Assembly: GCA_037447605.1 (NCBI GenBank)
Contig: CM074805.1
Location: 2,947,361-3,011,360, forward strand
Direction of reading: 5' to 3'
Length of the DNA stretch: 64,000 nucleotides
Source: Zygnema circumcarinatum SAG 698-1b
Taxonomy: Eukaryota; Plantae; Zygnematophyceae
Positions within the stretch are counted from its first letter, which is position 1, and each line of letters starts with the position of its first letter. Below the pieces are notes generated by a model that did not search any database, was not told the origin of the DNA, and was given only the letters and a program-made list of their open reading frames with translations. Below, in pieces: positions 1,353 through 35,360 of this stretch. The translations under genes and the position numbers were made by a program.

Positions 1353-3262
1353 GAAGGGCTCCTCCCGCCGTCAATGCGCGCGCCGCCCGCCGGGCCGCGC
1401 TGGCGCGGGAGCGTCCCCGCGCTCGTGCGCGCCCGCCGGCAGCGGGACTCGAACCGGCGACGCCCCCCGCAACGTGCGCGAGATCGCGCGAATCCGACTC
1501 GCGTTGAATTCGCTGACAGGCGGCGGGCGGGCGGGCGAGGCTTGATCCGCGGGTGGATCCGAGGGAATCCGATCGCGCTGCGGCCAAGCGCGGGGGCGAC
1601 CGGCAAGCTGCCAAGTGGCACTCTTGGAGCACTCCCCGACAGCGTAGTTATCATAAGGATGTCGTCACCATATAACATATTGACGTCATTTTTTTCACAG
1701 AATTTCACAAGGAATTCAGCAGTCCGTGCAGGGCTTGTCAATCTTGAAAAAATCTGTCGACTGAGTTGTTTCGAGAACGGTACTCTTTCCTCCGTCGTGG
1801 GAGTCCAGAACAAGTACTACTTCCGAAAGTGAGTTCTTACGGGATCATATGAAGATTGCCAAGCTCCATTCCATGTTCGCCAAAAATTGCGGCGGCTGTA
1901 CGGCATAGCCAGCACGTGAGCTGAAAGCAGGCGGATATATACCAGCGCCGTACAGTCGTGCAGGCCACGTGCTGCCTCCGCGGGCCCCCATTGATGGACG
2001 CGCCGCCAACAGGGCTCCAGTGCGGCACCGCGTGGGCTGACGGAGCTACGCCGCGGCCATCATGACCTCCGCTCGCGCCAAAGCTAGGGTCGCAAAGGGT
2101 CAGGCACCTTCTGGCTGCGGCCGGCCGGGGTCGATTCCCTGGCCAAGAAACAAGTAGCCATGTAGGCTATGCGAGGGCCTAGGGTGCTCGTAGGGGGATA
2201 GGCTCGACGCGCTCGAACGGCCCCCTCCGATTGGCCGGTCGCGCCCGCCCGCCCGAGTACCTCCGCCCGCCCGCCCGCCCACCCGGCGGCGGCGCATCCC
2301 TGCGGGCGAATCGCGGATCGCTCTGGCCCCGGGCGGCGCCACGACGCGGTCCCCGCGGGGGAAGTCAACAAGTGCACGCGCGTATCCCCCACACGTGTGG
2401 ACACGTGCACGCACACGGCGGATCTCTCCCCGCGAGTGGGCTCCGCCACGTCGCGCGGGCCCGCGAGCGGCCGCGGGAGGGCGCCGCGTGGGCGCGCGCG
2501 GATTTGTCCGACGGCGCCGCTCGGGGCCGTCATGGCGGGGGGCGGGCGGGATTCGATTCGCCGCGGGACGTGCGCGCCATTGAAGCGGCGGCCGTACTTA
2601 GCGGTTTGGGCCGTGGAAGACGGGAAGTGCAAGTACTGATCCTGTAACGTTGATCGCGCAAATTCAGATTCGGATCAAGGAAAAGATGTGGCATTGATCG
2701 AACCAGCTCTTAATTCGAATCCGTTCGCGTATTCGCTTGTTTCCATGATATTGTACGCCCTTCTTGCGGCTGACGGAAGGGAGTACGCTCTGGGGTGGGT
2801 CCGTCGCAGTAGGTCGCGTCACATAAAAATAAGACATCGTGAGTAGGGCGTGCCAGTCTACGAAACGTTAGTATGCGTGTTCGTAAGTTTGACACCAGAA
2901 TGGGTACTCCAGTAACATCGCGATCTGCCTGCGGCATACTTTCGTAACTTTTTTTTTCATAACGCTTTTGTTAAGTCTGACAGCCCCTAGTTCTACCGGT
3001 ACTGTCACTTCGATACCAAAACGAGTACCCTACTACTAACTTTGACTTTTGGAATTGTTCAATTTGCAAATGACAAGGTTTCATTTGAAATTTTGAACAC
3101 TCGATCTGAGTAGTCTTTCAAAATGAACAATTAAACAAAGTTCAAAGTCTGAATATATTCGGTCACACGCGTGGATTCCAATTTTGCCACGTAGGATTCA
3201 AGCAATCTGAAGGATTTGCTTACCTCCGGCCCAATTTTCGCCGTACTGTACCACTTTTTGCT

Positions 3263-31000: not shown

Positions 31001-31837
31001 CAAACTGAAAGGAATGTAACTTATGCCTGCAGAAACTATGTCACTTGAATATGACAACAGAAGACAAATGCGTACATTAGATTCACAGTCTATACCTGCA
31101 GTGCAGTCTCGTCCAACACTGAAGTGAATGAAGAAAGATTCCGCATGTTCTTCTTTCCATCGTTCGCATAAAGCATCTGTGACAAATCAAGTTGTGTCAA
31201 CAGGAACAATCCCTATGCGCAACATTTATGAAAAGCATGATACATGGATCATCAAACGCTACATTCTGGACCGTAATCTGCACAACAGCTCAAAAGGACC
31301 AAAGAAGCTCCGTATGTCCTTAGCTTCCTCGTCCCTGTGGCATATGATGCGTGTTTTCCCATTGGTGCATCACACCACGCAGGTGAAATTTGCGAGAATC
31401 AACTTTCAAATTGAGATGATTACACGCAGAACCCGCGGCTTTTACCAACAGAGGCATGAGTACAGCTGTAAATTGGAGATTCTTTTGCAATAGAACAGTT
31501 TGAGTTTGTTTGTGTTTGTTTGTTGTTTTGTATTTTTTGTTGGAGTTCAGTTAGGGGAAGAGAGCGCTATAGGTTTGCAGTTGAGACGAACAGGGAATGT
31601 ATATTGCTGAACACACCTCCACAATCTCATACGTTGCTCGAGGCAAACATATTAAGTCATAACCTTACACCGGACTCAGTACTGCAACGTAGGGCGTTTG
31701 AAACTCTTAGCTTCTACTCATTGACATTGCAAATGGAGCTGGAAGAACGTTCGAACTAGGAGTAGCACCTGCCAGGTAACAGCCACAGGACTCCGCCATG
31801 GTTGAATGCGGCTGCGCAGCCGTGCGAGCGTGGCCAT
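25024..31837 (-). CDS. IVD: Isovaleryl-CoA dehydrogenase, mitochondrial
   Basis: Exons encode [130 protein letters not shown]. The first exon ([14 protein letters not shown]...) is inferred as a transit peptide. Confidence 0.95.
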
Positions 31838-32058
31838 GGCGCCTGGATGGCGGCCAGGCCTCAGGGCGCAGGCAGGCAGGCTCCGAGGTGCGGCGGGCGC
31901 CAACTGGCCGCCCCCTTCTTCCTTCCCTGCGAGGTCCCGCCGCGGCCATGGCCGTCCAAGGCCGCTCCGCGTCACGGCCTGCCACGTCGGCGCAGGGACC
32001 CTGGGGAAGGCGGGGGCGGGGGCCGCTGCGATTGGAGGATTGGCTGCCAAAAATGACT

Positions 32059-32079
32059 GCCACGTGGCAGCCACGTGGC
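32059..32079. promoter_or_regulatory. Tandem perfect G-box/ABRE palindromes (GCCACGTGGC x2) in the IVD/SELENOU divergent promoter
   Basis: GCCACGTGGC at 32059-32068 and 32070-32079, between start codons at 31837 (-) and 32237 (+). Confidence 0.6.
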
Positions 32080-32236
32080 GTTGACTCTCATTTGGTCGAC
32101 GCCACGGTGGTCGACGACCGCGGTGATCGTCGTCCGTCCGTCCGTCCGTCCGTCGTGGAGCGGTCGACCGGGTGCAGTGCGCCTGGAGGGAGGAAGGGAA
32201 GAAGACGCTCCTTCCCTGCTGAAGGCTGAAGGCTTC

Positions 32237-34074
32237 ATGGCTGCGCGGAGGCCGGAGGACCGCATGGCGGTAGCCATGGCCCTTCGAAATGTGGAGGTGG
32301 AGCGTGTCGTGGGGCCAGAAGGCGCTCTGTTTGTGCCCATGGGGACCTTTTGGAAGGATCAGGTGATTTTTTTGGATATGGTGGAGTCAATACTTTAAGA
32401 CTTAATACTCAAATAACTGCACACACCCTCCTTTTACGCGCCCTTGTACAAAAATAAACCAAGAAATGACGGCGTTTTATTAGATGATGCTTTTTAATCT
32501 CTTCGTTTTGGTGTTTTTCTGTTTTGTCACCTTTAAATCTGTTTCTGCACACGGGCTGTCGCAATTTCTTGCTTAGGCTTACGAAATACAGGCGATACTG
32601 TAGCCTCGCCGAGTCCCTTCGTATGCTTGTGTTTCAAAGGCCGGTTCTGTCGAGGGTCCTACTCTAGACTTCTAGAGTTTGAGTCTGGCAGGTGTATGGA
32701 ACATTTGATGTGAAGCACAAGTGCCCCATTGAAATCTGGAACGTTAGTTGGCAACACACTGACTGACAGGCTTAACATCATATGTTTGGAAGCCGGCCTG
32801 CCTCACCTTTTCCCACTCACGTCGTCATCTTTTGTCTATGCACACTTGTTTCATTGAAGAGGCCTGCCGAGAATATGTAAGCCGTTGTTTCTTTTTTGGA
32901 TCTTCAGTGTTCTCGCTTTGTTTCTCCCATGCTGACTATACAGGCAGTTGCCTTGTTTTTATATGGATGAAAGGTGGTGGTTATACACCTTCTACGACGG
33001 TTTGGGTGACGTCTTTGCCGTGGAGGAGCAATGGATATCTCGCGGGCGATTCCATACCTCCTCCAAGCTGGTGTTCGTGTAGTGGGCATAGGTGCGCTTC
33101 TTGGGGGAAAACGCCATCGCTTTGTCTGTTTACAATGTGCTTCAATGGATAAGAGGAGCTTGTGAAGGTCTCCGTGAGGAACTGCTGCATATGTCCTTTC
33201 AGTCTTGTTCCTAAAAGTAATTCTAAAGCTTCTGAATTTACTGAGATTGCCTCTGATCGGGACTCTACGGTTGGTCCATCACCGTGCAAATGATGGAAAA
33301 GGGTTTTTGGTACTTGACATTGAGATGATCTTGTGCTTGCCCTATGCAGGTCTTGAGACTCTTGGTGTAGAGGATTTTGTCGAGGGTGGATTCTGGAAAG
33401 GGGAGCTGTATATCGACAACGACAAGAAGGCATATAACGCCCTGTTGTTGAAATCGGTCGGCATTTGGGGAGCCATCTCACAGCTTATGTTAAATCGAAA
33501 AGTGAAAGCTGCACTAGCGCGTACCAAAACTGTTTCTGGCAATTTGGCGGGGGATGGCCTGTAAGTCACTTTCGCTTTCTTGCGCGCAATGGAAAGGAGA
33601 AAGGAAATATCAAGCGGATGGAGAGGATGCAGGACATCCTAATGTGTCATTTTTCGTTGTACTATTCTTGATACTACATAATCCTATGCTTTGTAGATGC
33701 CGTTTCAGACTGCATGTCCAACAGCCGAGCTTACAAGATGCATCATAAAGAAACTAATGACCCATCCTCATTTTTCTGTCAACCAAGGTCAACATGAGTT
33801 TTCGGCTGAAGTTTCAAAAGTCCGTAGTGCCTCTCTCAAACACCCCCATGCTGTTCGGGTGCTGGGTGGTTGCAGCCAACTTGGAGCCACGTTTGTTATG
33901 GAGGCGGGAGGGGCGACATTGTTGGACTATCGTCAGCAGAACTTCGCTGACCATCCTTCGCCGGAGCTTCTCTTGGAGACTTGTGGACTGCCTTCAACCC
34001 TCCTCCGCGAATCAATTGCCCAAGCTGTCAATGAGACTGAATGCGACGAGGATGTCTGTCGTACCGATCCATAG
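32237..34074 (+). CDS. SELENOU: PRXL2B/SELENOU-family thioredoxin-fold protein, predicted selenoprotein (217 aa, Sec54, UxxC). Exons 32237-32362, 32974-33091, 33350-33560, 33876-34074
   Basis: Spliced product ...GTFWKDQ/VVVIHLLRRFG[TGA]RLCRGGAMDISRAIPYLLQAGVRVVGIG/LETLGVEDFVEGGFWKGELYIDNDKKAY...SGNLAGDGL/QLGATFVMEAGG...FADHP. Total 654 nt, consistent splice phases, one internal TGA at the first Cys of the family CxxC motif, and a SECIS downstream. Confidence 0.88.
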
Positions 34075-34214
34075 ATGTTTCCAATCGAGAATGTCCGCCG
34101 CGGTCCAAGGAAAAAAATCGCATGGGCAGTTCAATTCTACGTGCCTTCTCATTGTATAGCATATGGAGGATGATCAAACGAGTATCTGGGATTCCCTGCA
34201 CCGGCAGTGCTTGA

Positions 34215-34288
34215 CAACCTGCATCAAACATGATGTCCCTTTTGGAAAATGCGCAAGCAGAACAAAAGCGACTGAAGTAGTGTGGTTG
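34215..34288 (+). promoter_or_regulatory. Type II eukaryotic SECIS element in the 3' UTR
   Basis: ATGA at 34230-34233, AAAA 12 nt later, 3' TGAA at 34273-34276. Helix II GTCCCTTTTG/CAAAAGCGAC (9 of 10 pairs), mini-helix TGC-GCAA-GCA, helix I CAACC/GGTTG. Confidence 0.85.
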
Positions 34289-34624
34289 CTGAGAGCTATC
34301 ACGTAGCTGTTGCTTGTCAAGACTGCTCAACGTAGTATAAAGCGCCGGTGACGCAAATTCCAATCATTCGTATTATCTGGCAGCTGTGCTGTTGTTCATG
34401 TTCGTCTTGCAAAGTGGAATGAGCGATTGTGGTGTGTGTGCATGACTTTCTGTGCAAGATGGGAACACTATTGTTCTTTTTCTTTTTTTCCCTCTGCCCA
34501 AGGGAAAGCAGTTAAAAAGCTCGTAGTTGGATTTTGGGTTGGAGCGGTCGGTCTGCCTCTACGGTTGAACTGGCCTCGCCATCCTTCTTGCCGGGGACGC
34601 GCTTCTTCGTATATGCAGACATTA

Positions 34625-34921
34625 GGGGGAGTCAGACCTTGACCATCGCCAAATCAATTTCGTAAGGCTGTCGGGCGAATTAAGCATTGGCTACGTACGC
34701 ATTTCGGTACGGCTGGGCTCAGCGAAGCCGCGGATCCCGAGCCGGAATTCGTACACGAACGAAGTGACTTTTAGTATAAGGAATTCGGGAATTTCGTAAG
34801 CGATGGTCAAGGACTGACTCCCCCTGTACACAACCGTAGCGAAATGCGTACCTAGCCAATGCTTAATTCACCCGACAGGCTTACGAAATTGATTTGGCGA
34901 TGGTCAAGGTCTGACTCCCCC
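34625..34921. mobile_element. MITE with about 90-bp TIRs and TA flanks
   Basis: GGGGGAGTCAGACCTTGACCATCGCCAAATCAATTTCGTAAG... at the left end and its reverse complement at the right; TA at 34623-34624 and 34922-34923. Confidence 0.85.
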
Positions 34922-35360
34922 TATCATTTAGTCTGCGGGCTGGTTTCCAGATGTGTGCTGTCGACAGCGTTGGCAATCGCTCAGCGACTGTCAGATTGTC
35001 AATGACCAACTCCACTGGTCGGCCACAGAGAACTGCCGCTTCTGGTCAACACGCATCACCGCTTAGTTCTGACCGAACTGAAGTCTCATTTTAGGGCGGC
35101 TGCAAGGACAGCAATTCCTGGGATAACCATTTCCATTTCCCGCGGGAGCATATATCCGGATGACGACTGATGCAGCTGCCGCTACGGAAAAGCGTCCGAG
35201 CAAGACGCAGCGAAACTTAAAGCTTGAAGCCAGCGCAATGCATACAGCGAAATTCAGTCCAATAGAACATGCCAAACAATGGCAAAGAGGCGTGAACAAA
35301 CAAGCCGAGGGAATGTGCCTTGCAGTACAGCATGTGACATAGCTGGCTGCCACAGTGTCC

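Follow-up and report, generated by a model that had tools for sequence, protein, structure and literature searches.

Stem-loops that lie in the coding region a few nucleotides 3' of a selenocysteine (Sec) UGA, termed SREs, are documented in vertebrate mRNAs, by experiment in the case of SELENON and by comparative prediction in that of SELENOT (PMC8704476; PMC1440920). For SELENON, effects of the stem, the loop, and the spacer on both termination and Sec insertion are described (PMC8704476). The SELENOT coding hairpin, an EvoFold prediction, starts 8 nt after the UGA (PMC1440920). It is one structure, deeply conserved across vertebrates. Readthrough elements that combine a UGA-C context with a 3' stem-loop form a second class of described systems, cited in PMC8704476. 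These operate through near-cognate tRNAs and involve no SECIS. In the viral UGA-C type and in hymenopteran SPS1-UGA, the UGA-C is followed by an extended stem-loop ~8 nt downstream. The bacterial SECIS, finally, is the sole insertion signal of its mRNA, binds SelB, and belongs to intron-less genes. Our search of the literature found no paper on an element of this kind in selenoprotein U or in algae.

The hairpin considered here lies in a stretch of 64,000 nucleotides (hereafter, the window) from the streptophyte alga Zygnema circumcarinatum SAG 698-1b. On the evidence of its sequence, the host is a PRXL2B/selenoprotein U (AhpC-TSA_2) gene with four exons on the + strand, laid out as follows.

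32237-32362, + strand: exon 1 (open reading frame, with a GT donor after 32362; a spliced contig covering 32232-32360 joins 32972).
32974-33091, + strand: exon 2, encoding VVVIHLLRRFG-U-RLCRGGAMDISRAIPYLLQAGVRVVGIG and containing the UGA and the entire hairpin (translation, splice joints, and aligned Sec- and Cys-type homologues).
33350-33560, + strand: exon 3, the core of the AhpC-TSA_2 domain (Pfam PF13911 and splice joints).
33876-34074, + strand: coding part of exon 4, with a TAG stop at 34072-34074 (translation and splice joints).
34230-34275, + strand: SECIS-like core in the 3' UTR (core scan and direct reading of the sequence).

The start codon is ambiguous and may be the ATG at 32237 or that at 32264. 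Exon 3 alone scores 33.1 bits against PF13911, for which the cut-off is 27, and the product motif RRFG-U-RLC aligns with the RRFG-C-x-x-C of proteins named prostamide/prostaglandin F synthase (PRXL2B). Algal, plant, and animal PRXL2B proteins make up the relatives of the host protein, the closest named ones in the protein search being Cys-type forms from Closterium species. The Zygnematophyceae are reported to have kept a few selenoproteins (PMC6627142).

Spliced contigs from two public runs of different studies (X1 and X2, one guessed to be RNA and the other of a kind not recorded) cover 32232-32360, 32972-33089, 33348-33560, and 33876-34324, with GT..AG ends and zero base differences, and the mRNA contigs end at ~34324-34372. 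Splicing at GT..AG ends points to mRNA as the best explanation of these contigs; expression of the gene is accordingly very probable, with the entire hairpin retained in the mature message. A low-depth contig of run X1 (17, versus 156 for the spliced form) covers 32363-32864 of intron 1 and represents either unspliced pre-mRNA or DNA carry-over. Upstream of the gene and across its start, the sequence at 31800-32230 is very GC-rich and includes a short GTCC tandem run at ~32124-32160.

Within exon 2, the UGA and the hairpin are arranged as follows.

33007-33009, + strand: UGA, the predicted Sec codon, at the first position of the redox motif U-x-x-C (in frame; homologues have TGA or TGC/TGT in the same column).
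33010-33020, + strand: spacer of 11 nt from the UGA to the lower helix (direct reading and fold).
33021-33028, + strand: 5' arm of the lower helix, 8 bp and perfect (sequence and RNAfold).
33031-33055, + strand: upper helix of 5 + 3 bp, with one bulged U and an 8-nt loop at 33040-33047 (MFE structure).
33058-33065, + strand: 3' arm of the lower helix, in Leu-Leu-Gln codons (sequence and fold).

The hairpin had been pointed out in an initial annotation of the window, and its description is borne out by the letters themselves: TGGAGGAG (33021-33028), read directly, is the exact reverse complement of CTCCTCCA (33058-33065); ATGGA (33031-33035) pairs with TCCAT (33051-33055) and ATC (33037-33039) with GAT (33048-33050); the 11-nt spacer, 33010-33020, reads CGTCTTTGCCG; and a C at 33010 directly follows the TGA. 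In the hairpin as a whole (33021-33065), it is U33036 that is bulged. The RNAfold MFE structure for a 69-nt sequence coincides exactly with this arrangement, at -25.7 kcal/mol, and the fold offers four possible extra pairs, of 33017-33020 with 33069-33072, which are weak and of which two are G-U. In codon terms, the 5' arm runs from the wobble base of an Arg codon through two Gly codons to the opening base of an Ala codon. A stable coding-region stem-loop a few nucleotides 3' of a Sec UGA is what characterizes an SRE, and the gene has one.

As in SELENON (SEPN1), then, a stem-loop in the coding region sits a few nucleotides 3' of the Sec UGA in an mRNA that also has a SECIS, or here a SECIS-like core, in its 3' UTR. 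The two cases differ in protein family and host, the present one being PRXL2B/SelU in a streptophyte alga and other protists; in spacing, which is ~6 nt in SELENON and 11 nt in the algal gene; and in that the predicted structure is not kept pair for pair among lineages. Unlike the single conserved structure of SELENOT, only the presence and the position of a hairpin recur among the PRXL2B genes. The 11-nt spacing had also been likened to that of the E. coli fdhF SECIS. A hairpin just 3' of the UGA in the coding region is indeed common to both, with the resemblance confined to geometry, and we regard the matching spacing as mere analogy because the algal gene is spliced, eukaryotic, and furnished with a SECIS-like core in its 3' UTR. 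By its position and its apparent association with a Sec UGA, the hairpin is probably a new instance of the SRE class.

Taken by itself, the gene gives the hairpin limited statistical standing. Dinucleotide shuffling of the 69 nt yields a z of -1.98, with 8 of 200 shuffles as stable. The codon-preserving comparison proposed in the initial annotation does return excess stability at 63-66 nt (z -2.1 to -2.4, p 0.005-0.03), a result that is nonetheless length-dependent and marginal: under the synonymous null, segments of 60, 66, and 78 nt have p values of 0.01, 0.03, and 0.17, respectively. When synonymous codons are instead permuted inside the region, p is 0.035 (66 nt), and a perfect Watson-Crick helix of at least 8 bp arises in 0.5% of synonymous nulls. 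The hairpin is real, and on this gene alone it is only modestly beyond chance.

Such values leave room for an explanation that we consider somewhat unlikely, that of a coding by-product: the conserved C-R-G-G-A ... I-P-x-L-L would force partly complementary GGN GGN and CUN CUN codons, and the perfect helix in the window's gene would reflect lucky wobble choices without function. The peptide R-G-G-A ... L-L-Q does predispose the arms of the hairpin to complementarity. Synonymous nulls that encode the same peptide already fold fairly stably, at a mean of -17 to -18 kcal/mol, the RGGA...IPxLL motif gives G-rich and C/U-rich arms and is found in Cys-type proteins too, and the p values from this gene alone, 0.01-0.17, speak for the same explanation. 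Five wobble positions are involved in the lower helix, and every one of them is set to pair.

The stability of the hairpin in its mRNA context depends on which part of the message is allowed to fold. When the whole naked mRNA (909 nt) is folded without restriction, the lower helix meets competition from the GC-rich 5' part and its probability is 0.08. Limiting the base-pair span to 70-150 nt raises this to 0.63-0.89, and confining the fold to the message from the UGA (or +10) as far as the 3' end gives 0.96-0.98, even though everything downstream is free to compete. This last case mimics the mRNA that a ribosome at the UGA has yet to read, and we weight it above the unrestricted fold, whose low value we judge less relevant for the model while still counting it against the hairpin. 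In these calculations, the fold ahead of a ribosome at the UGA is dominated by the hairpin.

Comparison with relatives carries the argument further. Relatives were collected by word-based protein searches with the single-exon open reading frame and then with fragments, and their DNA by contig look-ups. Nine further Sec-type sequences with DNA were obtained (L002, L003, L004, L035, L036, L037, L038, L040, and L042), and in all nine the TGA stands in the same column and the conserved protein continues in frame. The folding statistics cover nine Sec-type mRNAs, those of the window, L004, L002, L035, L036, L037, L038, L040, and L042; L003, a partial genomic sequence, stands outside these statistics and was compared with the GC3-matched null only (z -1.25). 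The coding sequence is complete in eight of the nine tested, with L037 missing most of the part 5' of the UGA. Segments of 66 nt, aligned to codons, were taken along each coding sequence, and each was set against 150 synonymous resamples drawn with the gene's own codon usage.

The segment after the UGA has a z of -1.89 in the window's gene, -2.10 in L004, -1.15 in L002, -3.60 in L035, -2.65 in L036, -1.02 in L037, -3.63 in L038, -1.71 in L040, and -0.29 in L042. The mean is -2.0 (n = 9) and is still -2.0 when the discovery sequence is left out. For 137 other segments of the same coding sequences, the mean z is -0.03 with an sd of 1.03 (Mann-Whitney p 2e-5), from which we take the null to be well calibrated. 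By z, the post-UGA segment ranks first in five of the nine genes, and by MFE in six. A null matched for local GC3 gives a similar picture, and segment lengths of 57-84 nt return mean z values of -2.1, -2.2, -1.7, and -1.4. Excess folding after the UGA is thus present in eight of the nine Sec-type mRNAs, the exception being L042. Local structure of a recoding type gains real comparative support here, of a statistical kind, across the sequences compared.

The lineages behind these values are well separated. On the protein tree, the Sec-type sequences occupy several deep, long, separate branches, interleaved with Cys-type forms from Closterium, bryophytes, a fern, and insects. Even in the closest group, conserved residues share only 30-42% codon identity, so that the synonymous choices of the relatives are close to independent. 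Against a coding by-product stands the behavior of z: although the null already fixes the amino acids and controls for codon usage or GC3, the values are consistently negative in independent Sec-type lineages; the peptides differ among those lineages (RGAALDLSSLKP, RSAAEEISSLQP, RLGAREVSALKP); and the other segments average zero.

Two observations among the relatives call for a remark. L042, the sole Sec-type sequence without excess post-UGA folding, reads RRWG-U-SIA-R at ~340-350, that is, U-x-x-A and not U-x-x-C; its GC content is high, and its sample carries the label gut metagenome. Run SRR8128906 contains two Sec-type PRXL2B transcripts (P0001 and P0003; L001/L002 and L004) that are 64% identical, which implies two Sec-type paralogues in that organism or sample.

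In the nine folds examined (L003 included, L042 excluded), the main helices have their starts 8-14 nt downstream of the UGA, and within that range the pairing varies. For the window and L004, the lower helix joins GGAGGAG-type codons with Leu-Leu-Gln codons. Relative to these two, the register in L002, L003, and L035 is shifted by 3 nt (i+j differs by 3), and in L036-L040, which have differing peptides, the arms are built from other codons and the register is different again. RNAalifold applied to the five closest Sec-type sequences returns a consensus two-part hairpin with a covariation term of only -0.2 kcal/mol. Compensatory changes, which the initial annotation had named as a check, lend weak support, with three pairs changed on both sides and little covariation among those five. 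The consensus, which was derived from the same five sequences that it is scored on, has 89% of its cells paired, versus 50-65% with the partners slid, and 11 of 500 shuffles reach its score.

Synonymous-site conservation, another of the proposed checks, came out negative, the hairpin sites being no more conserved than sites elsewhere. The averaged pairing-probability profile around the UGA shows only small differences from the null and is given no weight here. Both the differing registers and the lack of excess synonymous conservation in the hairpin are what a by-product of coding would lead one to expect. As far as these predicted folds go, the recurrent feature is a stable hairpin at this distance from the UGA and not one homologous structure.

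Cys-type members of the family offer a control. DNA was available from two Closterium genomes (L008 and L009), one distant transcript (L043), and moss-like metagenome or metatranscriptome contigs (L017, L021, L024, and L029), with full coding sequence in only four of these: L043, L017, L008, and L009. Over the same segment, z is -0.51 for L043, +0.28 for L017, -2.77 for L008, and +0.05 for L009, a mean of -0.7. The strong fold in L008 (Closterium sp. NIES-65), which is the top segment of its own coding sequence, is not shared by its orthologue L009 from strain NIES-68. A Mann-Whitney comparison of Sec-type with Cys-type z values after the codon gives p 0.07, with only four Cys controls. A scan of metagenome DNA for codons of the pattern RRFG-[U/C]-xx-CRGGA gave 25 loci and no extra Sec-type sequence; 6 of the 25 are real PRXL2B, all Cys-type and moss-like, and the others are chance matches.

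The Closterium gene L008, with an equally strong hairpin in the same place, counts in favor of a coding by-product, and the three of four Cys-type genes that have the same or a similar peptide and no excess folding count against it. L008 bears in the same way on a further alternative, that the mRNA structure is selected for reasons unrelated to Sec, for example as a pause that aids folding of the thioredoxin-like domain or as an mRNA-stability element common to PRXL2B genes. A structured stretch does stand at the same protein position in all lineages, and L008, which has Cys at this position, also folds strongly there (z -2.8). The sister-strain orthologue L009 (z +0.05), the moss-like L017 (+0.3), and the distant L043 (-0.5) point the other way: with no excess in these three, the excess appears to track the UGA and not the protein position, few as the Cys controls are. 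We think a role unrelated to Sec quite unlikely.

L008 has one further peculiarity. Its intron region at 2129-3070 contains extra partial copies resembling exons 2 and 3, which tblastn places at 2129-2188, 2229-2333, 2570-2656, and 3005-3070 and which the orthologous L009 does not have.

The reading that we favor, with middling confidence, is that the hairpin serves the mRNA of an algal, PRXL2B-type selenoprotein U as an SRE-like (selenocysteine/stop-codon redefinition) element. We infer that the folding after the UGA has been selected because of Sec decoding, and the mechanism suggested for it is of the same standing. With a UGA in the A site, ~10 nt of downstream sequence lie within the mRNA channel of the ribosome, as judged from footprint geometry, so that the 8-bp lower helix, which starts 12 nt after the UGA, would still be intact where the mRNA enters the channel. 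There, if the SELENON element is a guide, the helix might slow the ribosome or disfavor the action of release factor, and the resulting delay would lengthen the time window for Sec-tRNA delivery by the complex formed on the 3' UTR SECIS. The C that follows the UGA in 7 of the 10 Sec-type sequences would fit a weak termination context.

A wider reading can be put forward tentatively, as possible and short of what we would expect to hold: that Sec-type PRXL2B/SelU genes in deep eukaryotic lineages (streptophyte algae together with several unrelated protist or metatranscriptome lineages) retain a stable hairpin of one form or another, 8-14 nt downstream of the UGA, with its register free, and that this hairpin decays after a change from Sec to Cys. 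On that view, SRE-like helpers would amount to a structure-only layer of Sec decoding that is ancient and general in eukaryotes and not peculiar to a few vertebrate mRNAs. A real signal would mean that local tuning of UGA redefinition efficiency extends beyond animals. The algal gene makes a compact test case, one exon in which synonymous mutations are possible on both arms, and setting Sec against Cys in a single family of proteins makes for a clean comparison that public transcriptomes would allow to be scaled up.

The initial annotation had further supposed that the gene carries both a local and a distal recoding signal. The local part of that claim has the comparative folding behind it, as statistical support, and for the distal part there is the SECIS-like core at 34230-34275, which consists of AUGA, a 10-bp helix with one mismatch, an A-rich apical loop, and then GA. 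A simple core scan finds a SECIS-like core in the 3' UTR of five of the eight Sec-type relatives scanned. Rfam at gathering thresholds gives no match in the entire 64-kb window, this core included, and at permissive E-values (up to 10) over 33900-34700 it gives only chance-level matches of microRNA type and misses the core. The apical part is very similar in the cores of the window, L004 (1384-1429), and L035 (732-776), and in the first two it has the form GGAA.ATGCG.AAGCAGAAC-like.

The hairpin after the UGA is itself not a SECIS of either kind. A eukaryotic SECIS, which has a kink-turn core (an AUGA ... GA quartet) and an unpaired AA in its apical loop, is rejected on the grounds that 33021-33065 has no AUGA/GA core and that Rfam has no match in the window, and a bacterial one on the grounds that the host gene has three GT..AG introns removed and a SECIS-like core in its 3' UTR.

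In one last alternative, the hairpin would primarily stimulate near-cognate, non-Sec readthrough at a leaky UGA-C, giving a protein with Cys, Trp, or Arg independently of the Sec machinery. The algal gene shares with the viral and SPS1-UGA elements both the UGA-C context and the downstream stem-loop, and a 3' stem-loop ~8-11 nt downstream resembles known readthrough stimulators. Unlike those elements, the algal gene has a SECIS-like core, its UGA falls exactly at the catalytic Sec/Cys position, and nothing in these data points to loss of the Sec machinery. We regard this alternative as very improbable. The related suggestion in the initial annotation, that the hairpin serves as a fallback should the Sec machinery be lost, as with insect SPS1-UGA, finds no support here.

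Just 3' of the gene, at 34623-34923, lie two 100-nt inverted-repeat arms that are 92% complementary and 101 nt apart. Contig depth over this repeat reaches 10^4-10^5 in runs X1 and X2, versus about 150 across the gene, which suggests a very high-copy, MITE-like element.
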